From IMG/VR virus record IMGVR_UViG_3300036781_000418, positions 186,001 to 250,000 of that record: a stretch of DNA of 64,000 nucleotides. One strand, given 5' to 3'. The notes beneath the pieces were generated by a model, which saw nothing but the letters and a program-made list of their open reading frames with translations, was not told the DNA's origin and did no database searches. A program made the translations under genes and the position numbers. Below are positions 7,536 to 56,835 of the stretch, one piece after another. Positions within the stretch are counted from its first letter, which is position 1. Every line of letters starts with the position of its first letter.

Positions 7536-8750
7536 ATGAAAACAGCTTACGTAGTGATCGGCGCCGGCTTCGGCGATGAAGGCAAGGGTTTGATCACCGA
7601 CTACCTCACACGGCGTAGTGGTGGACGAGCGGTTGCTCGCTTCAACGGTGGCGCACAAGCTGGACACACCGTCCAGCTGCCCAACGGGGTGCGCCACGTC
7701 TTTGGACACTACGCGTCTGGCACCTTGGCCAACGCTAACACGATCCTGTCGAACAAGTTCATCGTCAACCCGTTCCTCCTGAAGAAGGAGCACGACGCGC
7801 TGGCGAAGATCACGAAGGGCCGCACCCAAGTCGCCGCGATGGCTGGAGCTCGGGTGACGACCTTCTACGACATGGTCCTCAACCAGCTTAAGGAACGCGC
7901 CCGCGGTAACGACCGCCACGGTTCCTGTGGCTGTGGCATCAACGAGACGGTCACCCGCCACGAAGAGCTTCCGCTTCGCGTCGGTGACCAGGTGTCGGAG
8001 TTCTACGCCGTCCACAAGGCGATGGCCGTCAAGCTCCACAACTACGTTGAGGCGAACAACCTCGACTGGCAAGCACTTGTCCGTGAAAACGGCTCGTTGG
8101 AGCTGGATCCGATCACGCACGCCTGGTCTGCCTACTCGACCATCCAAGACCTGATCGTCAAGGTCTCCGATCGACCAGCCCACCACCTGGTGCCGTCGGT
8201 CTTTGAAGGTGCGCAGGGCCTGATGCTCGACGAACACCTTGGCGCCTTTCCACACGTGACCCGCTCGATGACGGGCCTGCCGCAGGCGGTCGCCGCCGCG
8301 ATGGACATGGGTGTGGATCACCTGATTCCGGTGTACGTCACCCGAGCCTACTCCACGCGCCACGGTGCCGGGTTGTTCAAGTACGAGGACCAGCCGATCT
8401 CCGACGGCTTCGTCTTCGTCGACCCCACCAACGTGGACAACGAGTGGCAAGGCTCGATCCGCAAGGCCCCACTCCGACTTGGTCAACTCCAGCACTTCAT
8501 CGGTTCCGACCTGGTGCGTGGTGAACGGATCGCCGAAGCGTGTGGCGTCACCCTTGGCAAAGCCCAGCTTGCCGTCACGTGCCTTGACCAGCTCGGTCCA
8601 AACGTGAACGTGATCGACATGTTTGGCGAAGTGCTGGACATCAAGACCGAAACCCTCCACAACGTCATCGCGACGGTCTGTGCGTTGGAACCCTTCTTGC
8701 TCAGCTACGGTCCCACCAACCAGGATGTTCGAGTGGCGCCTCGCGTTTAG
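7536..8750 (+). CDS. purA: adenylosuccinate synthetase-like protein (divergent PurA clade)
   Basis: GAGFGDEGKG, RFNGGAQAGHT, FEGAQG, PHVTRS, TRHGAG. Confidence 0.8.
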   Translation: MKTAYVVIGAGFGDEGKGLITDYLTRRSGGRAVARFNGGAQAGHTVQLPNGVRHVFGHYASGTLANANTILSNKFIVNPFLLKKEHDALAKITKGRTQVAAMAGARVTTFYDMVLNQLKERARGNDRHGSCGCGINETVTRHEELPLRVGDQVSEFYAVHKAMAVKLHNYVEANNLDWQALVRENGSLELDPITHAWSAYSTIQDLIVKVSDRPAHHLVPSVFEGAQGLMLDEHLGAFPHVTRSMTGLPQAVAAAMDMGVDHLIPVYVTRAYSTRHGAGLFKYEDQPISDGFVFVDPTNVDNEWQGSIRKAPLRLGQLQHFIGSDLVRGERIAEACGVTLGKAQLAVTCLDQLGPNVNVIDMFGEVLDIKTETLHNVIATVCALEPFLLSYGPTNQDVRVAPRV

Positions 8751-12861: not shown

Positions 12862-12911
12862 ATCCTGACTAACTTGGTGTACGCGTAGCGTCGCCGAGTT
12901 AGAATGTACCT

Positions 12912-13205
12912 ACCATGTCGAAAGACACGGTGATTGTCGTAATTCGGCTTGAGTTGATGAGGGTAACACGGGGGTTCAACTCCCCCCAGCTCCACCAAAA
13001 GGGTTTACTGGAATCTTTCTGATGGGGCTGAACGGGTAATCGACTACGCTACTGAAATGATAGACGCGACATGCAAGGCGATCTGCACCGATGATGTTTG
13101 TCGGAAAGAAGCAAAATCTTTAAATGCTAACAACAGCGTTTACGCTCTCGCCGCTTAAAAACCGTGCGCAGCTGGGGCCGATCGCCTTATAATCCAAAGA
13201 TCACT
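12912..13205 (+). ncRNA. ssrA: circularly permuted (two-piece) tmRNA, tag ANNSVYALAA*
   Basis: T-arm plus CAGCTCCACCA (ends 12997) lies upstream of the GGGGCTG 5' end (13024); G3-U70 pair; resume codon GCT at 13126 after TAAAT; TAA at 13156-13158; outer ends approximate. Confidence 0.92.
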
Positions 13206-13229
13206 CAAGGGGCTTCGGCCCCTTGTTTT
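13206..13229 (+). terminator. intrinsic terminator of tmRNA
   Basis: CAAGGGGC-TTCG-GCCCCTTG-TTTT. Confidence 0.85.
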
Positions 13230-13303
13230 ATGCCCAGACCCAAACAATCTGTTGGCGTAAAACCGTAAATAGTCTATGATGCCTCCATTGGTCGAGGCAC
13301 CCC

Positions 13304-13792: not shown

Positions 13793-13869
13793 GACTCCAT
13801 AGCTCAGTTGGTTAGAGCAGCGGCCTTCAAAGCCGCCGGTCCTCGGTTCGAGCCCGAGTGGAGCCACCA
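13793..13869 (+). tRNA. tRNA with UCA anticodon (opal-reading), copy 1
   Basis: GACTCCA/TGGAGCC-ACCA acceptor; anticodon arm GCGGC-CTTCAAA-GCCGC; canonical D and T arms; short variable loop. Confidence 0.88.
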
Positions 13870-13928: not shown

Positions 13929-14005
13929 GCGCCCATAGCTCAGCGGTCCAGAGCAACTTGCTTCAAACTTGTTGGTCCTCGGTTCGAATCCGAGTGGGCG
14001 CACCA
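13929..14005 (+). tRNA. tRNA with UCA anticodon (opal-reading), copy 2
   Basis: GCGCCCA/TGGGCGC-ACCA; anticodon arm ACTTG-CTTCAAA-CTTGT with two U-U mismatches. Confidence 0.78.
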
Positions 14006-29534: not shown

Positions 29535-29732
29535 CAAAGCACATCTAGCGAGAACCCAAGTGCAAGGTTAGCCAAGCACAACGGTGCGATAGAATGCATT
29601 CATGCAAGTTGATGTTGAAGTTTGACATCGACAAAACAACTGAGGCCTTGCTTCAGTGACCTACCTCGGTAGGTACGCTCATTAAAAATTTGACGTGACA
29701 TCTAGTCCAAGGGCACCAACCCTTGGACATCT

Positions 29733-29806
29733 GCGCCCATAGCTCAATGGTAGAGTATCGCTTTGACATGGCGATTACGAAGGTTCGATTCCTTCTGGGC
29801 GCACCA
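29733..29806 (+). tRNA. tRNA-Val(GAC)
   Basis: TCGCT-TTGACAT-GGCGA; CCA encoded. Confidence 0.9.
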
Positions 29807-29809
29807 TTG

Positions 29810-29957
29810 TTCATAAACCCAAGAGTTACCGCTTGCAATCGGTTATCTACTTTAACTTGGTGTAAAAACCCGGAGTGCGGTTCGAGTCCGCACAACGCCC
29901 ATACTGGCTTCGGGGGCAATCTCCGAGAGCTACTTTTGTTGCTCTTGGGTTTATGAA
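29810..29957 (+). ncRNA. Y-RNA-like element A
   Basis: 16 bp outer stem TTCATAAACCCAAGAG/CTCTTGGGTTTATGAA; TACCG-N9-GGTTATC; internal T-arm GTGCGG-TTCGAGT-CCGCAC. Confidence 0.65.
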
Positions 29958-29966
29958 TTTTTCTGT

Positions 29967-30052
29967 GTGGACATGACTGAGAGGCTGAAGGTGACGGGCT
30001 GTAACCCCGTTCTGTAAAAAGCGCGTAGGTTCGAATCCTACTGGCCACACCA
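29967..30052 (+). tRNA. tRNA-Tyr(GUA)
   Basis: ACGGG-CTGTAAC-CCCGT; long variable arm; CCA. Confidence 0.9.
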
Positions 30053-30061
30053 AGTTTAGAT

Positions 30062-30135
30062 GCGGGATTCGTATAGTGGTATTACCTCAGCCTTCCAAGC
30101 TGATGATGAGGGTTCGATTCCCTTATCCCGCTCCA
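30062..30135 (+). tRNA. tRNA-Gly(UCC)
   Basis: TCAGC-CTTCCAA-GCTGA; U73-CCA. Confidence 0.93.
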
Positions 30136-30150
30136 CATTAAGAGGCTTGA

Positions 30151-30618
30151 ATGGCTAGAGGAAGAATTGAAGTCTCACGTGAGCAACTCCTCCAAGCAAT
30201 TGAATCGACAGATTCTGCCGTTCAAGCTTCTAAGCAGTTAGGATTGATGTACACCACGTTTATTCGCAGGTGTAAAGAGCATCAACTATATGCTCCAAAT
30301 CAAGGTGGTAAAGGAACTCAAAAACCTCGACCACAGATGAAAATCGCTCTTGAGGATATCTTCAACGGTAAACATTTGATGGATTCAAAAGCCATTAAAC
30401 GGAAACTGTTTGAAGCAGGTCTTAAGAAAGAAGAATGCGAGTGTTGTGGAATAGGTCCAGTGTGGAATGGCAAGAAGCTTACGCTTCAGCTTGACCACAT
30501 TGATGGAGATCGAACTCACAATGCTTTTGAGAATCTGAGAATTCTCTGCCCTAACTGTCACACTCAGACAGCCACATTTAGTAAGGGTAAAAATAGGACA
30601 CATGCGTCTGTGGCGTAA
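30151..30618 (+). CDS. HNH endonuclease (free-standing, homing-type)
   Basis: CECCG..LQLDHIDGDRTHNAFENLRILCPNCHTQT; AT-rich; stop lies inside the downstream tRNA-Leu. Confidence 0.9.
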   Translation: MARGRIEVSREQLLQAIESTDSAVQASKQLGLMYTTFIRRCKEHQLYAPNQGGKGTQKPRPQMKIALEDIFNGKHLMDSKAIKRKLFEAGLKKEECECCGIGPVWNGKKLTLQLDHIDGDRTHNAFENLRILCPNCHTQTATFSKGKNRTHASVA

Positions 30619-30689
30619 TTGGTAGCCGCGCTAGGTTGAGGGCCTAGTCCTATAATGGGGTGCAGGTTCGAGTCCTGTCAGACGCACCA
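30604..30689 (+). tRNA. tRNA-Leu(GAG)
   Basis: CTAGG-TTGAGGG-CCTAG; long variable arm; ACCA. Confidence 0.9.
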
Positions 30690-30696
30690 TGTTTTT

Positions 30697-30771
30697 GGGG
30701 GAGTACCTCAGTGTTAGAGGGCCCGCTTTTTAAGCGGAAAGTCGAAGGTTCAACTCCTTCCTCCCCCACCA
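30697..30771 (+). tRNA. tRNA-Lys(UUU)
   Basis: CCCGC-TTTTTAA-GCGGA; ACCA. Confidence 0.85.
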
Positions 30772-30775
30772 GTTT

Positions 30776-30891
30776 GAGAACCGTCGTTGATTGGTTATCG
30801 GAAAAGTCAGGGGTGCTTAAACCCCAGGATGAGCATGGTTCAAGCCCGTGCACCCTCGCAAGAGGTTTTACCGATCTGCATTTTTGTTCTC
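30776..30891 (+). ncRNA. Y-RNA-like element B
   Basis: GAGAAC/GTTCTC outer stem; AACCG-N9-GGTTATC; internal T-arm-like GCATGG-TTCAAGC-CCGTGC. Confidence 0.6.
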
Positions 30892-30901
30892 TCCGTTTTC
30901 C

Positions 30902-30996
30902 GACGAACCGTCGTCGAAGGGTTATCTAGTTCACGACTAAAGGGCGCGTATGTGTCCGGCTGCAGAAGCCATCACCCTTCACATCATTTGTTTGTC
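30902..30996 (+). ncRNA. Y-RNA-like element C
   Basis: GACGAAC/GTTTGTC and GAAGGGT/ACCCTTC stems enclosing three small hairpins; AACCG-N9-GGTTATC. Confidence 0.65.
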
Positions 30997-31000
30997 ACTT

Positions 31001-31075
31001 GGGCTTCTAGTATAGGGGGAATTACTACTGTCTTGCACGCAGTGAATCGGGGTTCGAGTCCCCGGAGGTCCACCA
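31001..31075 (+). tRNA. tRNA-Ala(UGC)
   Basis: ACTGT-CTTGCAC-GCAGT; G3-U70; ACCA. Confidence 0.9.
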
Positions 31076-31084
31076 AGTTTTAAT

Positions 31085-31161
31085 CGGAGTGTAGCGCAGT
31101 CTGGTAGCGCATCTGCTTTGGGAGCAGAGGGTCCCAGGTTCGAATCCTGGTACTCCGACCA
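31085..31161 (+). tRNA. tRNA-Pro(UGG)
   Basis: CGGAGTG; TCTGC-TTTGGGA-GCAGA; ACCA. Confidence 0.95.
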
Positions 31162-31221
31162 CGTTTTCGCACGGCACGGATGACCGTTATCATCCACACT
31201 ACTACGACTACAAGGAACTAA

Positions 31222-31509
31222 ATGGTACACGTAAAGATCATGTCCGGTGAGGACACGCACGATTCTTACCCAGGTAAGAACTACACGCTGATCACAGTCA
31301 ATGACCGAGATCGGATTCAGTTCGGCGAATGGGGTTCGCTCTTCGGTAACCCAGCCAACACAGCTGACGATCGCGGTGGAAACACCGAGGTGATGATCGT
31401 GATTCGCGAGAAGAGTTCAGAGCAGGAGACGTACCCGCTGTTGGGGAACGTCTACATCATGAACGATCAAGGTAAGACGATTGCGACTCGCCAGAAGAGC
31501 ATCAATTAA
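31222..31509 (+). CDS. hypothetical protein
   Basis: AAGGA RBS; 95 aa between tRNAs. Confidence 0.65.
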   Translation: MVHVKIMSGEDTHDSYPGKNYTLITVNDRDRIQFGEWGSLFGNPANTADDRGGNTEVMIVIREKSSEQETYPLLGNVYIMNDQGKTIATRQKSIN

Positions 31510-31516
31510 GAACAAC

Positions 31517-31624
31517 GCGGACGTAGCTCAGTTGGATTAGAGCTCGGCACACAAAACAAAGGCGGCCGGCTTGCCGATCAGTAGTGTGACGCGGTCAGAG
31601 GTTCGAGCCCTCTCGTACGCACCA
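31517..31624 (+). ncRNA. tRNA-like RNA with an expanded anticodon loop
   Basis: Normal acceptor, D and T arms with ACCA; CACAC/GTGTG stem closes a ~31 nt loop with no 7-nt anticodon loop. Confidence 0.7.
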
Positions 31625-31806
31625 AACGCGGACTCTCCCTGCTCACAGCGCTCGGAACGCCCATACAACCCATGGAAGAGCTCCTAGCTAGTACCTAGAG
31701 GCGGACTTTCGGCATCACTTAAAAACTGGTGCGGTTGGTGGTTAGCTTGTATGGTGCTCCCTGAGTAAAGAGGACCCGACCGGACAAGTCGCAAAACTGT
31801 TCCGAT

Positions 31807-31882
31807 GCAGGGGTAGCTCAGTTGGTAGAGTACTTGTTTGCCAAGCAAGACGTCGCGGGTTCGAACCCCGTTCCCTGCTCCA
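31807..31882 (+). tRNA. tRNA-Gly(GCC)
   Basis: CTTGT-TTGCCAA-GCAAG; TCCA. Confidence 0.93.
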
Positions 31883-31888
31883 AATTTT

Positions 31889-31978
31889 GGACACTTGGCC
31901 GAGAGGCTTAAGGCACCGGTCTTGAAAACCGACGGGCCCTTACGGGTCCCGTGAGTTCGAATCTCACAGTGTCCGCCA
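31889..31978 (+). tRNA. tRNA-Ser(UGA)
   Basis: CCGGT-CTTGAAA-ACCGA; long variable arm; GCCA. Confidence 0.92.
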
Positions 31979-31983
31979 GAACA

Positions 31984-32045
31984 TAGCAACCGCACGTGCA
32001 GGGTTATCATCCATTCGCTCTCCCTGTACAACCTCTTTGTTGCTA
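31984..32045 (+). ncRNA. minimal Y-RNA-like element D
   Basis: TAGCAAC/GTTGCTA and GTGCAGGG/CCCTGTAC stems; pyrimidine-rich loop; AACCG-N9-GGTTATC. Confidence 0.65.
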
Positions 32046-32056
32046 GTATTTCAGTT

Positions 32057-32180
32057 AGGGATGTCGTCCAGTGGTAGGACAGCCGCCTCAACGTCGTGAA
32101 TGACATCTTTAGTTGCGCAAGTAACCGCCGCTTCATGGTTATCCAAGCAGCTTACGTGGGTTCGATCCCCACCATCCCTA
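32057..32180 (+). ncRNA. tRNA (Gly-like) with the Y-type stem inserted in the anticodon loop
   Basis: AGGGATG/CATCCCT; D and T arms intact; ~53 nt insert AAC..CTTTAGTTGC-GCAA-GTAACCG-N9-GGTTAT. Confidence 0.7.
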
Positions 32181-32224
32181 ACCCCTTGACTTCAAGGGAA
32201 AGTATCCATTGGGTTCTTTCCTTT

Positions 32225-32354
32225 GGGGTCGTAGTGTAGTGGACAGCACGTTAACATCGATTGCTCCCTTTGTTGGACTTTGAATCCAACCGCTCGTGAT
32301 TGGTTATCTTTCTACAAAAAGACAGGATGGGTTCGAATCCCATCGACTCCACCA
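32225..32354 (+). ncRNA. tRNA-like RNA (G3-U70, ACCA) with the Y-type stem inserted 5' of the anticodon arm
   Basis: GGGGTCG/CGACTCC-ACCA; insert TAAC..CTTTGTTGGA-CTTTGAA-TCCAACCG-N9-GGTTA. Confidence 0.7.
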
Positions 32355-32367
32355 AAATTCTTTCCAT

Positions 32368-32496
32368 GCAGTCTTGGCGTAACGGTAGCGCGCGAACAGT
32401 CGTTCGCATCTTTAGTTGTCGCAAGGCAACCGTTCGTGAATGGTTATCTAAAGTACAAAGACGAGGTCCGTGGTTCAATTCCCGGGGACTGCACCA
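32368..32496 (+). ncRNA. tRNA-like RNA (ACCA) with the Y-type stem inserted in the anticodon stem
   Basis: GCAGTCT/GGACTGC-ACCA; insert AAC..CTTTAGTTGTC-GCAA-GGCAACCG-N9-GGTTA. Confidence 0.7.
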
Positions 32497-32564
32497 ACTA
32501 TTGGAGACGACAATGACAAACGAGAAAGGGCGATTGTGTTAGGTTAACTACACAAGGAGCCCAA

Positions 32565-32942
32565 ATGAGCCGAACCTTTCGGTGCAAGAACTACGAAGAC
32601 ACGCAGAACACGAGCTGGGACCGTCAAGGTCGCAAGATCGGTGGTTTCTACTGCGAGTACAGCTACGCGAACGAAGTCTACGACAGCAACCTTCACTGGG
32701 GCTGGCGGTACGTGCACATCTTTCGCCCTCCAACTCAGGAGGAGCTGATCAAGGCGTACTGGCGGAACCACGGCGAAAGCCGACACCGCTGCGCTCGCTC
32801 TCCCAGTCGGTACCACCGCGGCACGAGGATGGCGGAGAATCGTCGAATCAACAACCAGGAGCTGCATAAGTTCCTGAAGAACCCAGATCACGAGCCGATG
32901 CTCGAGGCCAACCCTCGAAACTGCTGGTGGGACTGGAGCTGA
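32565..32942 (+). CDS. hypothetical basic protein
   Basis: AAGGAG RBS; 125 aa. Confidence 0.7.
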   Translation: MSRTFRCKNYEDTQNTSWDRQGRKIGGFYCEYSYANEVYDSNLHWGWRYVHIFRPPTQEELIKAYWRNHGESRHRCARSPSRYHRGTRMAENRRINNQELHKFLKNPDHEPMLEANPRNCWWDWS

Positions 32943-33048
32943 TTTTCCGTTGTGAGCCTTGATCGGCCAAAGTCGCTGACTTATACGGAACCTGTGCAGC
33001 CTCATCAGCTGCACCGTGGTGACCATGGACAGTCACCGATCATTCAAC

Positions 33049-33135
33049 GCGGGTGTGGCGAAATTGGTGGCCGCGCTAGGTTTAGGTCCTAGTGGATTTA
33101 CATCCTTGCAGGTTCGAATCCTGTCACCCGTACCA
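33049..33135 (+). tRNA. tRNA-Leu(UAG)
   Basis: CTAGG-TTTAGGT-CCTAG; long variable arm; ACCA. Confidence 0.92.
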
Positions 33136-33299
33136 GTTTGGGGAGCATGGTTAGCGCCGTGTTCAGGCTAGCTTGGCCAAGCGGTTTAGTAGCGGACGGC
33201 CGTTCGCGAGCGACTTAGAGATGATGGTAGTGCTGTTCGACTCAGCGCCATCGAAAGCCACCCAAAACCCATAAATACTCCATACGTTTTGGAGTAGCC

Positions 33300-33629
33300 A
33301 TGAAGGTTGCACAGTTGTTCGAAGAGCTGAAAGCCTACACAGGTGGTCGGCTTTCAAAGACTCTCGAGAATGCAATGTTGGAGTTCTGCGATGCGTTTGA
33401 CATCGACAGCTTCTCGGTCTCAACTGAGAAGTTTCATCAGCCGCATCCAACTAAAGGTTGGAGCGATACGGTAAACGTGAAGAACTTCTTCATCAACATG
33501 GGGACTGAAAAGAACGCGACGCTGTTGAAACGGTACTTGAAGGACAAGGGCTTTGGAGTCGAAGATCGATACCGCCCTGAACATGTCGTCAATACTTGGA
33601 ACGTTCCAAAGAAGTTCAAGTCAAAGTAA
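33300..33629 (+). CDS. hypothetical protein with MKVAQLFEE N-terminus
   Basis: TAAATA at 33272; GGAG RBS. Confidence 0.7.
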   Translation: MKVAQLFEELKAYTGGRLSKTLENAMLEFCDAFDIDSFSVSTEKFHQPHPTKGWSDTVNVKNFFINMGTEKNATLLKRYLKDKGFGVEDRYRPEHVVNTWNVPKKFKSK

Positions 33630-33632
33630 CAC

Positions 33633-33720
33633 GCGTCGTGACCCTACATCGGTCTTCTAAGCCGATGACGAAAAAGAGTAGGATGGACGTCCACGGGTTC
33701 GATTCCTGCACGCCGCTCCA
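33633..33720 (+). ncRNA. D-arm-less tRNA-Arg(UCU)-like RNA
   Basis: GCGTCGT/ACGCCGC-TCCA; ATCGGT-CTTCTAA-GCCGAT nested in a CCTAC/GTAGG stem; T-loop TTCGATT. Confidence 0.55.
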
Positions 33721-34761: not shown

Positions 34762-34893
34762 GGTGAGACCCCCGAAGTGACTAGGACGCGAGGCGGTCAT
34801 CGAGTAGAGGCGGCCACGGAATCGTGGCGGTAAGTAGTGAACACAACCTCCTCTACCGACCAGTGAGGTGACTGGATGAGAAAGCAGGGTTAA

Positions 34894-34993
34894 ACGCACT
34901 GATGAGCTGGTGAGAGTCCAGCGAAACGGGAAGGTGAACAGCCGATCGAGCGCTAGGTCGCGGCTCTCGACGCAGTATCCTTTCCGTATGCGT
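34894..34993 (+). ncRNA. type I hammerhead ribozyme
   Basis: Stem I ACGCA/TGCGT; core CTGATGA; stem II GCTGG/CCAGC; GAAA; stem III CGGGAAGG/CCTTTCCG; GTA cleavage triplet ending at 34988. Confidence 0.85.
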
Positions 34994-35718: not shown

Positions 35719-35844
35719 GGTCCAATAGTGTAGTAGCACGATCAACAAAAGCACATCATCATGGCGGTAGCCAAGCCTAGGAGAGCGCATCTCCCACTGA
35801 TGAAGGAGCAGGTGGAGAATCGGGACTCCTGCGTTGGATCACCA
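35719..35844 (+). ncRNA. tRNA-like RNA with a large structured central insertion
   Basis: GGTCCAA/TTGGATC-ACCA; short D arm; TCATCA/TGATGA stem; GCAGG/CCTGC T-stem with an oversized loop. Confidence 0.55.
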
Positions 35845-35849
35845 GAATT

Positions 35850-36014
35850 AAGCAACCGATAGATAACGGTTATCAGAAAGTAGCGTCGAAAGACTTGTGG
35901 GTTCGAGTCCCACCTGAGAGTCACCTAAGACGTGATGGTTTGTACTCAGTGGCGGAATTGGTAAACGCACAACTCCGGCCGCAAGGCCATCTCCGTGTCG
36001 CTCCTTTGTTGCTT
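35850..36014 (+). ncRNA. YrlA-like Y RNA (circularly permuted tRNA-Leu-like module)
   Basis: AAGCAAC/GTTGCTT outer stem; AACCG-N9-GGTTATC; then T-arm, loop-closed acceptor stem CTGAG/CTCAG, D-arm TGGCGGAATTGGTAAACGC. Confidence 0.75.
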
Positions 36015-36038
36015 TTCATAAACTAGAGGAACTTTCCC

Positions 36039-36485: not shown

Positions 36486-36754
36486 GACCGCTGAACGCAC
36501 GCCAGATCGGCGAGCTTGAAGCCCGTGAGTTTCTCGGCGACGAAACGTGGAAGCGTTGGAAGATCGCGTATGACGAAGCCATGGGCTACCGCAAGACGCT
36601 GAAAGGCAAACCGACGGAGGAGCAGCTGCTGACCCTCCAGAACAACGCAATGGACATCGAGTTCTACGGCTCCGTGCTGTTCCACTCGGCGACCCTTGCA
36701 AACCGAAACATGTGCGGCTGCACTCGATGCGGCCAAGCACGACAGAACAAGTAA
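36473..36754 (+). CDS. hypothetical protein
   Basis: Likely start ATG 36482, coupled to the upstream stop. Confidence 0.55.
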   Translation: MFPMRPLNARQIGELEAREFLGDETWKRWKIAYDEAMGYRKTLKGKPTEEQLLTLQNNAMDIEFYGSVLFHSATLANRNMCGCTRCGQARQNK

Positions 36755-36881
36755 ACCGCTCGTTGTTGATTATCCCTTCCACCCTTAGGGACCTTAGTGT
36801 AACTGGTAGCATTCCGGATTGATACTCCGGGGGATGGGTTCGAATCCCTGGTCAAACTCGACGACACTTCTTTGTTTACTT
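36749..36881 (+). ncRNA. Y-type stem enclosing a near-complete tRNA-Ile(GAU)
   Basis: AAGTAAAC/GTTTACTT and GTTGTTGA/TCGACGAC stems; inner D-arm, CCGGA-TTGATAC-TCCGG, T-arm; no CCA. Confidence 0.65.
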
Positions 36882-37380: not shown

Positions 37381-37680
37381 ATGAAACTTCGCTACGTTCT
37401 TCAGGCACTCAGGGACCAGCTCCCTATTCGCCGCTTCCTACGCAACTTTCTCGTGACGAGAAACGCGTGGGGCCTGTTCCACATCAACTCACACGTCGCA
37501 CAGCGCTCAGGTAAGCCTAAGGTCGGCTACCCAACGAAGGCGTCGGCGATTCGAGCTGGTGAGAATATGGGGAAGAAGACGGGCTACCACTACAGCCCGT
37601 ACAAGTGCTGCCACTGCGCCGACTTTCACATCGGTCGGAACCGCGACTCCATCGCAGCCCGACCTGAACAACGACCTTAG
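37381..37680 (+). CDS. hypothetical protein with C-terminal zinc knuckle
   Basis: YKCCHCADFHIG. Confidence 0.65.
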   Translation: MKLRYVLQALRDQLPIRRFLRNFLVTRNAWGLFHINSHVAQRSGKPKVGYPTKASAIRAGENMGKKTGYHYSPYKCCHCADFHIGRNRDSIAARPEQRP

Positions 37681-38906: not shown

Positions 38907-39584
38907 ATGCTGCTCGCGGCCCTAGCCCTCTCAACCACGATCTCGACCTGTTCCTGGAACAACCCAGGTGCCGATCCGTACATGGGTCGTTTTGAGGACG
39001 CGATCGACCGCTACGAGTTCATCGACGAAGACGTGCGGGCCAGGCTGAAGGCCAAGGTTGCGGCACATGAGTACGACGACATGGTGGAGATCAAGCGTGA
39101 CGAGATCCACGGACGGCAGGAGTACTCCAACGAGCTCTCCAACATGAACTTCGGCAAGGGTCGGGTCTGCGTGACGGTGGACCGGTCTGGTTGGAAGCCG
39201 GAGCACGTTGAACGTGGCCTGGTGTTCTGTGTCGACGGCACCTGCATCTTGATTCCCACGGTTTGCCGTAACGTGACCGTAATAACTCGGCTTCAACGGC
39301 TGACGGGTGGCGCCTCAGCTGGGCCGCTTGAAGGCCAGACGTTCGGTCTCGGTCCAGCTCCAGTGTCGCCACCCACCTCGCTACCGGTCGATGACGTCAC
39401 GTACGGCCTCTCGGCGACACCGGTGGGGCCGAGTACGTTTAGTTCGCCACCGATGTTGTACCAACCAATCGTCGTTCCACCGTTGCCGCCACTCACCGCG
39501 ATCCCCGTCGTGCCCGAGCCGTCCAGCCTGTGGCTGATGCTCGTCGGGCTGGCCATGATCGCGGTTCGAAAGCTCCGTCGGTAA
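38907..39584 (+). CDS. PEP-CTERM protein (MHFG-family-like)
   Basis: Signal peptide; CSWNNPGADPYMG..MNFGKGRVC..CRNV; C-terminal VPEPSSLWLMLVGLAMIAVRKLRR. Confidence 0.85.
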   Translation: MLLAALALSTTISTCSWNNPGADPYMGRFEDAIDRYEFIDEDVRARLKAKVAAHEYDDMVEIKRDEIHGRQEYSNELSNMNFGKGRVCVTVDRSGWKPEHVERGLVFCVDGTCILIPTVCRNVTVITRLQRLTGGASAGPLEGQTFGLGPAPVSPPTSLPVDDVTYGLSATPVGPSTFSSPPMLYQPIVVPPLPPLTAIPVVPEPSSLWLMLVGLAMIAVRKLRR

Positions 39585-40598: not shown

Positions 40599-41678
40599 AT
40601 GAAGATGCATCTGATTTTCTTGAACGACCACTCTGGCTCAATGCAGGGTATCACGCGCTACGCGATGGCTGACTACAACTCAGTCACCAAGGCCGCTGCC
40701 GACGCCGCAGCCGCCCACAACATCCCCTCGACCTTCACGACAATTTCCTTCGGCAAGTACAACGGTGGCCGCTTTGCAGGGCGTGGCTACGCACCGATGC
40801 TGGAATCCCAGTTCGTGCCGTCTGACATCGCCAAGGCCATGACGAGCTGGCCAGCCGACGGCGGCACCCCGCTGTGGGAGGCCTTGATCCTTGCGATCAA
40901 CACCGCCATGTCGGCGCCGGACTACGCCGACCCTGAAACCACCTTCAACGTCGTGCTGACGACCGACGGCCAAGCGACCGACGATTACGAGTACGGCGGC
41001 GCAGCCCAGAAGCTGATGAAGGAGTGCATCGCCACCGACCGCTGGACCTTCGTGTTCCGCGTTCCGCGTGGTGGTGCTCGTTCGATCATCCAGAAGGGTG
41101 TGGACGAAGGCAACGTGATCGAGTGGGAACAGTCCGCAAAGGGTGTCGCCGATTCGACGGCCGCCACGTCGCGTGGTATGCAGGACATGTACCTTGGTCG
41201 CACGCAAGGTGTCCGTTCGACGAAGACCTTCTACTCGAGCCTGAAGGACGTCACCTCCGCCGACGTCAAGGCCGTGCTGACGGACATCTCAAAGGAAGTC
41301 CAACTCTGGCCGGTGTCAGCACCGGAAGCTGGCACGCAGATCCGCACGTTCGTCGAGTCCCGTCTTAACGATGGCAAAGGTGGCAAGCTGCTCAAGGGTG
41401 GTGCGTTCTACCAGCTGGTGAAGACCGAGACGAAGATCCAGGACTACAAGCTCATCGCCATCCGCGACAAGACGTCCGCCTCGATCTACTGCGGTGCCGC
41501 AGCCCGTGACATGCTCGGCCTGCCGAAGTACGGTGACGTTCGCGTTGCGCCGCAGGACCACGGCAACTTCGACGTGTTCATCCAGTCAACCAGCGTGAAC
41601 CGCAAGGTCGATGCTGGCACCCAGATCATGTACTGGCCTGGTGTCGGTGTTGCGTACAAGGAGGGCGCCTCAGCCTAA
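40599..41678 (+). CDS. vWA domain protein
   Basis: FLNDHSGSM, GGTPLWEA, VLTTDG; TAAATA at 40535. Confidence 0.85.
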   Translation: MKMHLIFLNDHSGSMQGITRYAMADYNSVTKAAADAAAAHNIPSTFTTISFGKYNGGRFAGRGYAPMLESQFVPSDIAKAMTSWPADGGTPLWEALILAINTAMSAPDYADPETTFNVVLTTDGQATDDYEYGGAAQKLMKECIATDRWTFVFRVPRGGARSIIQKGVDEGNVIEWEQSAKGVADSTAATSRGMQDMYLGRTQGVRSTKTFYSSLKDVTSADVKAVLTDISKEVQLWPVSAPEAGTQIRTFVESRLNDGKGGKLLKGGAFYQLVKTETKIQDYKLIAIRDKTSASIYCGAAARDMLGLPKYGDVRVAPQDHGNFDVFIQSTSVNRKVDAGTQIMYWPGVGVAYKEGASA

Positions 41679-46605: not shown

Positions 46606-47439
46606 ATGAAAAAACTCCTGCTTTCTGTACTGGTGGTCGCGGCGTCGTTCGCCGTCCACGCAGATCCGGTCCCGGATCCTGGCATGCTCACCTTGACCGG
46701 CTATCAGAACGGCTCCGCGCCGATCGGTACCGTGACGGTGAATCCGCCCGGCTTGTTCAACAACCAAAGCGAACTGGTCGCGGTCAGCGGCCTCAAGGGT
46801 TCGTTCGACGATGGCTTTGGTGCTGTCAGTCTCAACGCGCTGTTCTGCGTCGAGCTGTTCGCTCCCACGGGCAACATCGGTCAATCCCTGGCCTACACGC
46901 AGAACACGCCGGGTCTCGGCGCCTACAGCATGGGTTTCACGGCGCTGCAGTCCTCGCGCCTGAACAACCTGTTCGCCAAGGAATTCGCGACCTACGGCGT
47001 CGTTGGTGGAACTACGGCCACGCAGTCGGCCGCCACGCAGCTCTCCATCTGGGAGATCCTGTACGGCGGTGATGCTGGCTTCGGTGATCTGACGGGCAAC
47101 CTGCTGGAAACCCTGGGTGTGGCCGACACGAACGGCTTCTGGTCGACCGACCTGGCCGGTGCACGCACCACGGCTGAAGGCCTGCTGGCTGGCATCGACT
47201 CGTACGACTCCTCGGGCTTCAACGTCTCGCTGACGTCGTACAACAACGGCCTGTCGAAGCCCGGCTACCAGGACTTCATCTCGGTGGACGTCAGTCTCGG
47301 TTCGCAATGCGGTCTGAACCCGCTGGGTTGCGATCCGACCACGGTGCCGGAACCTGACTCGCTCGCTCTCACCGGTGTCGGTCTGATGGGTCTCGGCTTC
47401 GTCGCTCGCCGTCGCAAGGCCAAGCAGCTGCAAAGCTGA
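46606..47439 (+). CDS. PEP-CTERM sorting-domain protein
   Basis: Signal peptide; FCVEL..AATQLSIWEILY; C-terminal VPEPDSLALTGVGLMGLGFVARRRK. Confidence 0.9.
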   Translation: MKKLLLSVLVVAASFAVHADPVPDPGMLTLTGYQNGSAPIGTVTVNPPGLFNNQSELVAVSGLKGSFDDGFGAVSLNALFCVELFAPTGNIGQSLAYTQNTPGLGAYSMGFTALQSSRLNNLFAKEFATYGVVGGTTATQSAATQLSIWEILYGGDAGFGDLTGNLLETLGVADTNGFWSTDLAGARTTAEGLLAGIDSYDSSGFNVSLTSYNNGLSKPGYQDFISVDVSLGSQCGLNPLGCDPTTVPEPDSLALTGVGLMGLGFVARRRKAKQLQS

Positions 47440-50379: not shown

Positions 50380-50766
50380 ATGACGACCATTCTTCGATGG
50401 CCGCCGACCTCGGTAACGCACCATGAAGTCTACAAGGACCAGTTCACCTGGGTCAGCGAAGACGAACGCGACAAGCTGATCGCCGAAGTTCAACGGATCG
50501 CGGCCGACTACATCGTCTTGGCTCCTCGTTCGGCTAACTTGATCCACAGCTTCGCCACCATGGCGGAGACTGCTGGCTACCACTTGTCCATGGGCATGGA
50601 CATTCGCAACCACTACTTGCTCTACCACACGAGCCCGCTGACGAAGCGGTGGCGCGATAACCCCTACTCGCACGACATCCGCTTCGGTATCGACTTTTCA
50701 CCTGACCACCCAGACGCGATCTCAACTCTGATCTTGAAGGAAGTATGGATTCAACTTCATCCGTAA
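50380..50766 (+). CDS. hypothetical protein
   Basis: AGGAG RBS. Confidence 0.6.
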   Translation: MTTILRWPPTSVTHHEVYKDQFTWVSEDERDKLIAEVQRIAADYIVLAPRSANLIHSFATMAETAGYHLSMGMDIRNHYLLYHTSPLTKRWRDNPYSHDIRFGIDFSPDHPDAISTLILKEVWIQLHP

Positions 50767-51365
50767 AGGTGCTGTTCCTCGACGTGGACGGCGTGCTGAA
50801 CACATCGACCAGCTGCCTGCTGAAGTGCGGCATGTACCTGTCGACGTGCGCCCAGCGTGACGCGTGGTGGGAGCTGTTTCACCTGGTCGGTCATGATGAC
50901 CAGGTGCCGTACGGTCCGACCTACAGTGTCAACTCGATCGACCCAATGGCCGTCGGGCTGGTGAACCGCTTGTTGGACAAGGAACCGACCCTGCGGATCG
51001 TATTCTCCAGCTCGCACCGTTCGTTCTTTGCGGCCTCAACCTACGAGTACCCGTGCGAGTTCGCCTCGCCGATTCACTTGGAGCGGCTGACGACGTACCT
51101 CACGTCGCTTGGTATCAAGATTCAGGGTCGGTTGATCGGCATCACACCGCGCCTGCACACTCGCCGTGGTCTGGAGATCAACACCTGGCTGCAGGCCTAC
51201 GACGGTCCGGAGATCACGCACCACGCGGCGGTCGACGACGAGGCGGCTATCTACCCGTACGAGACGACGCTGATCCGAACCGACGCGAAGTTCGGCCTGA
51301 CGGCGGACAAGTACTTCGAGCTCTGCAACGCGCTGGGCATCCACGAATCACCGATCATCTACTGA
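50745..51365 (+). CDS. HAD domain protein (Swiss-army-knife RNA-repair type)
   Basis: VLFLDVDGVLN, IVFSSSHR, RGLEINTWL, AAVDD, GLT. Confidence 0.8.
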   Translation: MDSTSSVKVLFLDVDGVLNTSTSCLLKCGMYLSTCAQRDAWWELFHLVGHDDQVPYGPTYSVNSIDPMAVGLVNRLLDKEPTLRIVFSSSHRSFFAASTYEYPCEFASPIHLERLTTYLTSLGIKIQGRLIGITPRLHTRRGLEINTWLQAYDGPEITHHAAVDDEAAIYPYETTLIRTDAKFGLTADKYFELCNALGIHESPIIY

Positions 51366-51517: not shown

Positions 51518-51593
51518 CTGTCCGTAGCTCAATTGGATAGAGCCACGCCCTCCTAAGGCGTAGATCCCAGTTCGAATCTGGGCGGATGGACCA
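51518..51593 (+). tRNA. tRNA-Arg(CCU)
   Basis: ACGCC-CTCCTAA-GGCGT; A20; ACCA. Confidence 0.9.
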
Positions 51594-52760: not shown

Positions 52761-53684
52761 GTGGAGCTTTTCGGAATCATGTTTAACGGCTTGGCCATGC
52801 TGTGCTTGGTGGTCATCAGCCTCTTCATCTTCGCGGGGATCTGGCTTGATCGTCGCGGAACATGGTGGGCATGGAAATGGGCGGGTACGGCCGCACTGTT
52901 CGCCTACGTCTACTACATCAGCAACCTCCCGTACAACTTCGACGCCGTCCTTGGTGTGTTGACCTCCGCCGCCTTCTGGAAACCAGTCGGTACGTTCATC
53001 GGCGTCGGGCTGCTGTACACCGTCGTTGAGTTCCTCGCTGGCAACTACCGCATGGCCCGCAAGATCGCCGCGCTGTGGCAGTCCTTCCTCTCGAGCCGTC
53101 TGTCGTTGCGGTTGCCTGGTCAGCAACACTCGTCCACTGACCTGTCGTTCCTGCAGTTCGCCGACCCGTCGTACGCCGCCAAGGCCGCCGCGGTCGACGC
53201 TGACCTTGCCACGACCAAGTCGCTGATCGCGAAGTTGGGCAAGCAAGTCTACGTACCGCTCGCCGAACTGGGTGGTGAGAACGCGCAAGCCAGCGAAGAG
53301 TTGGCCGGCCTCATCACCAAGTACGGTTGGAACTACAGCTACGTGGGCCGCCTTGATGAGGGTCACTACGTTGGTGACTACAACGACCAGCTCAAGGAAC
53401 GCCTGGGCGACTTCGTCGGCAGCGTGCGCTTCTACGCGGACTACATCGACTTGAACATCGTGACGTCCTCCGCGCCACCGACCCTCGAACCGTCCGTGAA
53501 CAAGCTGCGCCTCGGCAAGTCCATCTGCGCCTGGGCCCTGCTGTGGCCGTTCTACGCGATCCACCTGCTGCTGGGTGACCTGCTGCAACACGTCGCCGAC
53601 GCCCTCGCCTCCCTGTTCGCCAAGTTCGGCAGCCGCTTCGTGAAGCTCGCCTTCGCCGGCGTCTTCGACATGAAGACCAGCTGA
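52761..53684 (+). CDS. multi-pass membrane protein
   Basis: Several TM segments; GGAG RBS; GTG start. Confidence 0.65.
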   Translation: MELFGIMFNGLAMLCLVVISLFIFAGIWLDRRGTWWAWKWAGTAALFAYVYYISNLPYNFDAVLGVLTSAAFWKPVGTFIGVGLLYTVVEFLAGNYRMARKIAALWQSFLSSRLSLRLPGQQHSSTDLSFLQFADPSYAAKAAAVDADLATTKSLIAKLGKQVYVPLAELGGENAQASEELAGLITKYGWNYSYVGRLDEGHYVGDYNDQLKERLGDFVGSVRFYADYIDLNIVTSSAPPTLEPSVNKLRLGKSICAWALLWPFYAIHLLLGDLLQHVADALASLFAKFGSRFVKLAFAGVFDMKTS

Positions 53685-53734: not shown

Positions 53735-54802
53735 ATGACCGCTCTCAAAACCTTCGAGCCAAACACCCTTGGTCGTGACATTGTCCTTGGTGACATGCAC
53801 GGCAAGCTTGGGCTCGTGCAGAAGGTGCTGACCCACCTGAACTACGATCCACAAGTTGACCGTCTCTTCTCGGTTGGTGACCTTGTTGACCGTGGCGAGG
53901 ACAACCTCGGCTGCCTACGACTCCTGCGTCAGGGCCTGAACGCCGTACAGTCCAACCATGGCGAGTTCATGTCCCACGCCTACTTCGGTCCGAACGACTC
54001 GACGTTGGCGATGAACTGGCCCAGCAACGGCGGCATGTGGGCGATCGACCAATGGGTTGAGTGGCACGACTTTCTGCACACCAACAAGCACATGAGTCAA
54101 GAGGCGGCCGAGTTGGCCGAACTTGCTGAGCTCCAACGTGAGCTGCCCGTGCTGATCACCATCAACCACCGCAACGGCAAGAAGTACCACATCGTCCACG
54201 CGGAGTTGCCGTACCTTCGGATGTACGAGCCGATCACGGACCGTCAGCTGTCTGACCCTGCCAAGGTACAGTTCATGTCGGATCGAAAGTATGACCGGTA
54301 CAACCTTGAGCGCTGCTTCCTTTGGCTGCGTGACATGTTCGGCTCGTTCCATGAGGCGGACATGTCGAACGAAGCCGTCTTTAAGCGGCGAGTTGCGGGA
54401 ATGGCCCACCACTCGCACATCAACATGCGTGAAATCTTCACGGACCAGCTGAGCCACGTAATCTCAGGCCACACGCCAGTACACCGCCCGTTCACCATGG
54501 TGGGCCAGACGAACATCGACACGGGCTCCTATAAGGAGTTTAAGTACAAGTGGGCCGGTGTCACCGCGTTGGTCCTAGACGACTGGACCTTCTGGAAGGC
54601 TCGATCCGAAGGTGTCGAGCAGGTTCAGCCGATGACTATGACCTTTGAGGACTTTGAAAGCTATGGACAGAACAATGACGTTCAAGTGCTCCCCGGAACA
54701 GGAGGAGTACATCATGGATCACCTACAACGGGGGACGAAGGACGTCCTGATCCATCACTCGGAACGGACGTGGATTGCGAACCACGTACACAAGAAGGTT
54801 GA
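53735..54802 (+). CDS. metallophosphoesterase (NinI/PphA-like Ser/Thr phosphatase)
   Basis: GDMHG, GDLVDRG, SNHG, VHA, GHTP, IDTG. Confidence 0.9.
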   Translation: MTALKTFEPNTLGRDIVLGDMHGKLGLVQKVLTHLNYDPQVDRLFSVGDLVDRGEDNLGCLRLLRQGLNAVQSNHGEFMSHAYFGPNDSTLAMNWPSNGGMWAIDQWVEWHDFLHTNKHMSQEAAELAELAELQRELPVLITINHRNGKKYHIVHAELPYLRMYEPITDRQLSDPAKVQFMSDRKYDRYNLERCFLWLRDMFGSFHEADMSNEAVFKRRVAGMAHHSHINMREIFTDQLSHVISGHTPVHRPFTMVGQTNIDTGSYKEFKYKWAGVTALVLDDWTFWKARSEGVEQVQPMTMTFEDFESYGQNNDVQVLPGTGGVHHGSPTTGDEGRPDPSLGTDVDCEPRTQEG

Positions 54803-55731: not shown

Positions 55732-56835
55732 ATGGAACGATACCTGGTCGGCGGTGCAGTCCGCGACGCGCTGATGAACGTGACACCAAAAGACCGTGAC
55801 TGGGTCCTTGTCGGCGCTACGCAGCAGGACATTGACGACATGGTCAAGGAAGGGTACCAGTGGGTTGGTGCCGACTTCCCCGTGCTGATCCACCCAAAAA
55901 CGAAAGAGGAGCACGCCCTCGCCCGAGTCGAACGTAAAGTCGGCCATGGCTACAACGGCTTTGAGGTGGACACGGAGGGCGTCACCCTCGAGCAGGACCT
56001 GGCACGTCGCGACCTGACCATCAACGCGATGGCTTGGGACACGAGCCCATCGATGGTGTACGAAGACGACATCATCGACCCGTACGGCGGTCGCAATGAC
56101 ATCAAGCACAAGATCATCCGTCACACGACGATGGCCTTCGTTGAAGATCCGCTCCGAGCCCTGCGTGTCGCGCGCTTCGCCGCCCGCCTCAGCTTCAGCG
56201 TCCACCCCACCACACACGACCTCATCAAGCACATGGGAACGTCCGGTGAACTGGAACACCTGACCGACGAACGTGTCTGGGCCGAGGTGAAGAAGGGCCT
56301 AAGCGGTCCGCACCCCACCGTCTTCATGTACCAGCTCTACAACCTCGGCATCATCAAGCACTGCGCAGTACTGCGTGAGGTCTTTCCATGGACCTACGAG
56401 TTCGTCGCCTACGGCGTGACGAAGTACCTGCGCATGGTCAAGGAGGAAGATCGCTTCGAACTGGGCCTGGCCTGCATGATGGCGTGTGGTGACGTTGAAA
56501 AGATCAAGGCCATTCCGTCCAGGACGAAGAAGGTCTACAACAACATCGGCTACCTGAACGAGATCCATGACTGGTCAAACGTGGCGGCCGACAAGTTGGT
56601 GACGGTCATCACGAAGATCGGCGGCCTACGTGAAGGCACGATGTTTGACGACATCGTCACCTGCCTCCAGCTGACGAAGCCAACGCAGATCGAGATCATC
56701 GACATCTTGACGGCCAGCCGCATGGTGATGCAGCAAGTTCGAGCCGACCAGTTCCCAGACCTTGAAGGCCAAGCGCTCGGGGCCGCGATGATCCAAGAAC
56801 GTGCGAAGCGCGTTGCTGAGCTGTTGTTACAATAA
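55732..56835 (+). CDS. cca: tRNA nucleotidyltransferase (CCA-adding enzyme)
   Basis: [53 protein letters not shown]. Confidence 0.93.

Follow-up and report, generated by a model that had tools for sequence, protein, structure and literature searches.

A conserved ~55-nt RNA element, putatively a small tRNA intron, interrupts phage tRNA genes and flanks circularly permuted tRNA genes

Apart from group I introns, bacteria and their phages are thought to lack tRNA introns, and permuted tRNA genes are known only from a red alga, a few green algae and some archaea. The closest described systems are the bulge-helix-bulge (BHB) tRNA introns of Archaea and the circularly permuted or split tRNA genes reported from Cyanidioschyzon merolae, some Thermoproteales and Nanoarchaeum (Soma et al. 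2007 Science; Randau et al. 2005). There, a small intron is defined by its own structure (two 3-nt bulges on opposite strands, separated by a 4-bp helix, each holding one splice site) rather than by its place in the tRNA, with insertions in the anticodon stem, anticodon loop and acceptor stem. The permuted genes consist of a 3' half, CCA, a spacer and a 5' half, flanked by sequences that pair to rebuild the intron structure, after which the cargo is circularized and then opened at the acceptor end by RNase P and 3' processing. Group I introns of bacterial and phage tRNA genes (e.g., in the anticodon loop of tRNA-Leu(UAA), in tRNA-fMet and others) exceed 200 nt, fold into P1-P9 with a guanosine-binding site and end in G. 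“Enigmatic” tRNA introns, with an unknown splicing mechanism, were predicted by tRNAscan in the 26%-GC Prevotella-infecting Lak megaphages, huge phages with large tRNA sets and recoded stop codons (Devoto et al. 2019, PMC6784885); no shared structured module or permuted genes were reported for them. Finally, two bacterial RNAs combine a tRNA-like domain with another element: YrlA, a bacterial Y RNA in which a stem formed by the RNA ends, with a conserved Ro60 (Rsr) binding helix, carries a tRNA-like T-arm/D-arm domain, which has a neighboring TROVE protein and which is also known from phages with tRNA arrays (Chen et al. 2014, PMC4201824), and two-piece (permuted) tmRNA, with a tRNA-like domain plus a tag reading frame and pseudoknots.

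Here, we describe a tRNA array of the uncultivated soil phage contig IMGVR_UViG_3300036781_000418 (342,591 bp), analyzed in a 64,000-nt window (positions 186,001 to 250,000 of the record; coordinates below are those of the window). Among sequencing runs, one soil-metagenome DNA run, probably the source sample, contains the sequence and no RNA run was listed; transcription and processing are therefore inferred throughout. The window encodes phage-type auxiliary functions, including NAMPT, an NMNAT-Nudix fusion, a PurA-like enzyme, a MoxR AAA protein, an HNH endonuclease (30151-30618), a CCA-adding enzyme (55732-56835), a HAD_SAK_2 RNA-repair-type phosphatase domain (50745-51365) and a metallophosphoesterase (53735-54802). 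It also holds a permuted tmRNA (12886-13249), two tRNA(UCA) genes and a + strand array of about 20 canonical tRNAs between 29.4 and 37.4 kb, in which a hammerhead core is also found.

A first-pass annotation had noticed three tandem tRNA bodies, each with an inserted module, and this observation is confirmed. The bodies A (32057-32183), B (32225-32354) and C (32368-32496) lie on the + strand, and each has an acceptor stem, a D arm and a T arm with a 53-60 nt insert between the D and T arms. The insert sits at different tRNA positions, in the anticodon loop at 34/35 in A and in the 5' strand of the anticodon stem in B. ARAGORN in standard mode misses all three. The Rfam tRNA model (RF00005) scores A at 47 bits with a 57-nt insertion, whereas B is picked up at 26.6 bits, against a gathering score of 47, by the tmRNA model through its two ends only (G3·U70/A73/CCA and the T arm). 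B is not a tmRNA, as it is 130 nt long, has no mRNA-like domain or pseudoknots, and 328 model positions are replaced by 92 nt. A ends in AACC, and B and C end in ACCA. Each body carries the motif AACCG-N9-GGTTATC, which has 7 exact copies in the window, all on the + strand and all inside the tRNA array, against 0.04 expected; relaxed searches add three variants.

Pattern scans of viral and metagenome contigs, together with a covariance model built from the hits (model R1), gave 47 closed copies of the module, 35 of them distinct, all inside tRNA arrays of large uncultivated phages. The retrieved loci are designated L plus a number; L016 is identical to window 29725-33434. Read 5' to 3', the consensus is (U)AAAAC; P2a, AUCGWYYGC; a 4-6 nt linker, then UUU; P1a, GUUGnn; a variable loop, often GCAA and once a 23-nt hairpin; P1b, nnCAAC; CG plus 3 nt; P2b, GYGRWUGGU; and UAUC. 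The module is thus a two-helix hairpin in which the 9-bp P2 is followed by an asymmetric internal loop (UUU/CG) and then P1. On the 35 distinct sequences, 91% of cells are paired, 10 of 15 pairs show changes on both sides, no shuffle in 500 reached the observed covariation, and sliding the partner drops pairing to 14-56%. This alignment was fitted to the model, but an earlier MAFFT alignment gives the same picture. The AACC/GGUU hairpin assumed at first sight is rejected: GGU pairs with an upstream AUC in P2 and AAC with an upstream GUU in P1, copies with GAUU or AGUU break the supposed hairpin but are compensated in P2, and the alternative pairing shows no covariation. The invariance of UUUGUUG, AACCG and GGUUAUC is partly imposed by the search patterns, although copies found only by the model still keep ACCG and UUAUC and vary P1 in a compensated way (GUUC/GAAC, GUCA/UGAC). 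Resemblances to 16S rRNA helix 45, a CRISPR repeat and the tracrRNA nexus are inconsistent with the covariation-supported fold.

The module has no match in Rfam 15. A covariance-model scan at E up to 10 over 31975-32510 and 35830-36030 gave no hit over the module to a known small self-cleaving ribozyme (hammerhead, hairpin, twister, twister-sister, pistol, hatchet, HDV), and no riboswitch or intron match was found. It is not a group I intron, being 53-60 nt with two helices and ending in UAU, and it is not a BHB, since the inferred boundaries lie at the same end of P2, flanked by a 3-8 nt strand and a 3-nt strand. Two patterns gave no hit in 185,579 bacterial and archaeal species genomes, and blastn in distant mode against 50,697 deposited phage records found only tRNA-arm matches; phage RsoM2USA shares only one tRNA. 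Full-text literature searches returned no description of the element, the Lak tRNA introns being the nearest report.

To ask whether the flanks are tRNA exons, we excised the module in silico at all combinations of boundaries. A consistent rule emerged, in which the 3' boundary lies 3 nt after P2b (UAU|C) and the 5' boundary 3-8 nt before P2a, so that the insert starts UAAAAC, UAC, AAAUC and so on. Under this rule, four genes with the body GGAGUUGUAGGGAAUUGGAAAACCC become class-II tRNA-Tyr(GUA), with the variable arm expected of bacterial tRNA-Tyr and with perfectly paired anticodon stems that covary across the junction (CG|CCA/UGGCG, UCG|CC/GGCGA, CCG|CC/GGCGG and CCG|GC/GCCGG). Three genes become tRNA-Lys(CUU), with stems including CC|CCA/UGGGG and CC|CGC/GCGGG, one becomes Asn(GUU) and one Pro(UGG), and A-type genes (window A, L004/L023 and L027:9938) become Gly(CCC) with loop CUCCCAA. 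A first offset statistic, which allowed G·U pairs and loop junctions, did not discriminate. A stricter test, requiring a junction inside a perfect 5-bp Watson-Crick stem with U33, R37 and a T loop at the right distance, succeeds for 11 of 35 members at offset +3 and for 0-3 members at each other offset from -4 to +9. The products align in length and architecture with intron-less tRNAs of the same phages, but no intron-less allele that would pin the boundaries was found in the retrieved loci or by a junction pattern in the viral contigs.

In A, the 5' exon (32057-32089) and 3' exon (32143-32183) are separated by the module at 32090-32142 (P2 32093-32100/32132-32139; P1 32112-32116/32121-32125 with a GCAA loop; 3' flank UAU; R1 44.7 bits, E=5e-9). 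The in silico product is called Gly(ccc), 75 nt, by ARAGORN, both with introns allowed and on the spliced sequence, and has loop CUCCCAA, stem GCCGC/GCAGC with one C·A mismatch, and 3' end AACC. In B, the 5' exon (32225-32251) and 3' exon (32309-32354) flank the module at 32252-32308 (P2 32256-32264/32296-32304; P1 32272-32277/32285-32290; R1 63 bits). Joining 32251|32309 gives a 73-nt cloverleaf with stem GUUUU/AAGAC, loop CUACAAA (anticodon ACA), G3·U70, A73 and CCA, although B-type genes need the 3' cut one nucleotide earlier or later. C is tRNA-like, with acceptor GCAGUCU/GGACUGC, A73, CCA and a module (P2 32399-32407/32436-32444; P1 32415-32420/32425-32430 with a GCAA loop; R1 58.8 bits), but none of 1120 boundary combinations gave a canonical tRNA, and under the UA|U cut its best arm has a 9-nt loop. 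The first-pass annotation had offered two readings, a chimeric RNA that could be charged without an anticodon and a novel small intron, and its interpretation is partly supported: the comparative data favor the intron. Its Gly anticodon for A holds; its claim that the other two bodies give no clean 7-nt loop holds for C but is wrong for B.

The alanine identity set in B is also real. Its acceptor GGGGUCG/CGACUCC-A-CCA satisfies G3·U70 with A73 and G1-C72/G2-C71, and the orthologue L047:154-226 (GGGCACU/AGUGUCC-A-CCA) keeps the first three pairs while four other acceptor pairs differ; alanine charging is inferred from these identity elements alone. Other B-type bodies have U3-A70 or C3-G70 and mostly carry CAU. 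After excision, however, B does have an anticodon. Many members would carry unusual anticodon loops, with A34 anticodons (ACA, AUG, ACC, AUC, ACU) or C37 (AUCAUCC), and one acceptor/D/T chassis (GCCGAUGUAGCUCAGUGG…G73) carries Lys, Asn, AUC, ACU or GCU anticodons in different phages.

In the window and in relatives, the module halves also occur in the opposite order (P1b-CG-P2b-UAU|cargo|J5-P2a-UUU-P1a), such that P1 is formed by the ends of the element and covaries (CAAC/GUUG, GAAC/GUUC, AAAC/GUUU). The first-pass annotation had described the element at 35850 as the inverse permutation of the closed form; this is right, as the element has the module halves at its ends and a closed acceptor, and goes further, as open copies include circularly permuted tRNA genes at the sequence level, with the circular intermediate itself inferred. 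In E7 (36750-36880, +; cargo 36774-36853), joining 36853 to 36774 gives …GGUC|CCU-U-CCA-CCCUU-AGGGACC…, a tRNA-Ile(GAU) in which the acceptor 3' strand, U73 and CCA are restored, followed by the spacer CCCUU and A1. The orthologue L022:4030-4161 gives …CGU|CCUU-A-CCA-UACUU-AAGGACG…, the same tRNA with a covarying acceptor stem (AGGGACC vs AAGGACG). E6 (35850-36014, +; cargo 35874-35976) is ordered as 3' part of the anticodon loop, variable arm, T arm, acceptor, spacer, acceptor, D arm and 5' part of the anticodon arm; its circularized cargo is called tRNA-Leu(cag), 83 nt, spanning the junction, a class-II tRNA-Leu(CAG)-like molecule split in the anticodon loop (CC|CAGAA).

Other copies do not fit neatly. 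E1 (29821-29946, +) is an open module whose cargo is an acceptor-less tRNA-like core consisting of an AU-rich anticodon-like hairpin, a T arm and a further, D-like hairpin; with E2 (30775-30892, +), a T-arm-bearing copy whose P1 is GAGAAC/GUUCUC, a compensatory variant of CAAC/GUUG, and 8 relatives, it forms a conserved “T family” in which P1 covaries. E3 (30902-30996, +) is an open module whose cargo has no tRNA features. E5 (31984-32045, +) is a minimal free-standing module with P1 formed by its two ends (UAGCAAC/GUUGCUA), P2 at 31996-32003/32022-32029 and only an 18-nt apical loop, starting UUAUC, as cargo; homologous ~62-nt elements occur in L065, L021 (two), L027, L035 and L071. The T family and the minimal forms are conserved, yet have no exons that would join into a tRNA, which suggests that the module has some role of its own.

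These copies speak for the main rival, which is possible but less likely than splicing and corresponds to the chimeric-RNA reading. Here, the RNAs would not be spliced, and the module would be the functional part (for example, a binding site or decoy for a host or phage protein, or a ligand pocket) displayed on tRNA or tRNA-like scaffolds that supply RNase P/Z processing and stability, with the closed, open (Y-RNA-like) and minimal forms as three presentations of it. Consistent with this, about 29 of its roughly 60 nucleotides are conserved in sequence and not only in pairing, there are about ten copies per genome, as with sponge RNAs, C has no tRNA product, and E6 and the T-family copies share the T-arm/D-arm topology of YrlA. 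Covariation across the junction is equally expected if the module stays in place as a third arm of a three-way junction. A mere scaffold, however, would not need a canonical 5-bp/7-nt anticodon arm with U33 and R37, class-specific variable arms, or a stem that covaries across the insertion point; in A-type genes the anticodon is split in two; and the permuted genes encode N73-CCA plus a spacer exactly where maturation of a real tRNA needs them. A Ro60/Y-RNA identity is rejected, as the stem of the open copies has no Ro60-binding consensus, the Rfam YrlA model matches only the T/acceptor/D part of E6 (model positions 29-81; 18 bits against a gathering score of 69), and no TROVE domain is found among the window ORFs.

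It is also very unlikely that the three bodies are tRNA pseudogenes inactivated by a repeated, MITE-like DNA element. The element is repeated about ten times in 8 kb and lies next to homing-endonuclease genes (HNH here and GIY-YIG in 12 related loci), but the exons stay canonical and covary across the junction in divergent phages, purifying selection on them is already seen, the element is strand-specific with covarying helices, which points to selection at the RNA level, and orthologous insertions are kept across contigs.

We therefore favor, with only moderate confidence, the interpretation that the module is a previously undescribed, position-independent small tRNA intron of about 53-60 nt, analogous to BHB introns and their permuted genes but structurally different and with a conserved primary sequence. 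Its fold, its fixed geometric relation to the exon ends, the canonical nature of the joined products and the permuted gene order rest on sequence comparison, whereas transcription, cutting at both boundaries, ligation and circularization of the cargo are inferred. The insertion point within the tRNA is free, ranging from 27/28 to 29/30 in the anticodon stem, 33/34 to 34/35 in the loop, and 68/69 to 69/70 in the acceptor stem, and the module interrupts at least six different tRNA body types, which is how position-independent introns behave. In A-type genes and E6 it splits the anticodon loop itself, so decoding would require its removal. In this view, the pre-tRNA would be cut at both boundaries and the exons ligated, A becoming Gly-CCC and B an ACA tRNA with an alanine-type acceptor stem; in permuted genes, pairing of the halves would rebuild the same structure, the cargo would be circularized, and RNase P plus 3' trimming at the encoded CCA-spacer would release the tRNA, as in C. 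merolae.

The enzymology would most likely involve a structure-specific endonuclease, or self-cleavage by the module, followed by a host or phage RNA ligase. The two boundaries lie opposite each other at the base of P2, next to the exon helix, and after excision the exons of stem-inserted genes would form a nicked helix, a good substrate for nick-sealing or RtcB-type ligases. No splicing endonuclease is known from bacteriophages, and no endonuclease or ligase was recognized in the window, although it does encode the CCA-adding enzyme and the RNA-repair-type phosphatases noted above. A 99-aa CxxC…H protein (37381-37680) is the most frequent non-homing-endonuclease gene in these arrays, present in 10 loci, but it remains only a lead: among its 21 homologues (20 close, one marginal) none of the close ones has a Pfam domain, and its AlphaFold2 model (pLDDT 78) has no PDB fold match. 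Of other neighbors, the 359-aa protein at 40599-41678 is vWA-like and that at 52761-53684 was uninformative. A mechanistic variant within the intron model, itself doubtful, is that the module is a self-cleaving, possibly self-ligating, ribozyme cassette that defines RNA ends in the long tRNA-array transcript, with any exon joining by RtcB-type ligation of 2',3'-cyclic phosphate and 5'-OH ends. The small, strongly conserved core with conserved unpaired nucleotides at both junctions, the placement of both boundaries at the base of one helix, the hammerhead core in the same array, and the free-standing copies between tRNAs, where end-processing is needed, are in its favor; the lack of similarity to any Rfam ribozyme and the need for one 55-nt fold to cut at two sites speak against it. 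More speculative still, and improbable on present evidence though not excluded, the module could be the smallest known autonomous splicing element, cutting at both of its boundaries and perhaps rejoining the exons, that spread to many tRNA species and positions and generated permuted tRNA genes in bacteriophages; some of its host tRNAs would then be deliberate recoders gated by splicing, as B and L047:154 combine an AlaRS-type acceptor with Cys- or His-reading A34 anticodons, and one chassis carries several anticodons.

A compact, sequence-conserved, position-independent intervening element in phage tRNA genes, with permuted genes of a kind not known from bacteria or phages, would imply either that an unknown RNA endonuclease/ligase pathway operates in infected bacteria or that there is a new small ribozyme. 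It would also explain tRNA genes that standard annotation misses in huge phages, as ARAGORN found none of A, B, C, E6 or E7 here, and it would give a handle on how such phages time or protect their own tRNA supply.

The tRNA array also harbors a probable type I hammerhead ribozyme at window 34892-34993 (+). Stem I is ACGCA/UGCGU, followed by CUGAUGAG, stem II CUGG…CCAG, CGAAAC, and stem III GGGAAGG/CCUUUCC with a ~43-nt insertion. Predicted cleavage would fall after GUA at about 34988, some 20 nt upstream of tRNA-Thr (35008). Rfam gives only a partial Hammerhead_3 hit (18.8 bits). Another tRNA missed by ARAGORN is located at 31517-31621 (+; Rfam 38 bits). It does not contain the conserved module that interrupts other tRNA genes of this array, but features a different insert in which the stem CGGCA/UGCCG encloses a 22-nt loop. 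A weak tRNA-like signal with a T arm, GGTTCGATTCC, lies between two small ORFs at 33632-33717 (+; Rfam tRNA-Sec 26 bits, E=0.1). Finally, two tandem tRNAs with anticodon UCA, labeled SeC by ARAGORN, are encoded at 13793-13869 and 13929-14005 (+), next to a permuted tmRNA at 12886-13249. These tRNAs would suppress UGA; together with a note about stops that accompanied the sequence, this suggests UGA recoding in this phage.

Among the module-bearing tRNAs, one tRNA chassis (GCCGAUGUAGCUCAGUGG…, G73), found in the type II bodies of related loci L002, L033, L047, L066, L069, L071, and L020, carries different anticodons in different phages: CUU, GUU, AUC, ACU, and GCU. Several module-bearing tRNAs have A34 anticodons that read NNU codons. 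Window tRNA B and its orthologue at L047:154-226 combine an AlaRS-type acceptor with the anticodons ACA and AUG. In the conserved “T family” (window 29821-29946 and 30775-30892; related loci L063, L027, L021, L039, L067, L061, L020, and L059), the module stem carries an AU-rich anticodon-like hairpin, CCGAG, a T arm, and a D-like hairpin, but no acceptor stem. If processed like the permuted genes, a step that is inferred rather than observed, it would give a circular acceptor-less tRNA core.

A 99-aa protein with invariant RNFxxTRNAWGLFHxNSH and YKCxxCxxxHxG motifs is encoded at window 37381-37680 (+), with homologues in L022, L023, L027, L061, L063-L065, L067, and L068, and is often directly adjacent to a module-bearing tRNA gene. 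It has 21 homologues, of which 20 are close and one is marginal (the latter alone carries a Pfam domain). All derive from similar metagenomic contigs, and no PDB fold match was found.

Beyond the array, window 7536-8750 (+) encodes an adenylosuccinate-synthetase-like gene (Pfam E=4e-40) which, judged from this similarity alone, could be a PurZ-type enzyme for 2-aminoadenine DNA. Two phage ORFs, at 38907-39584 and 46606-47439 (+), end in PEP-CTERM sorting motifs, which is unusual for phage proteins and hints at a host with an exosortase system. Finally, a HAD_SAK_2 (“Swiss Army Knife” RNA-repair) domain protein (50745-51365), a calcineurin-like phosphoesterase (53735-54802), and a CCA-adding enzyme (55732-56835), each on the + strand, cluster around tRNA-Arg(CCU) at 51518 and may be part of an RNA healing pathway.
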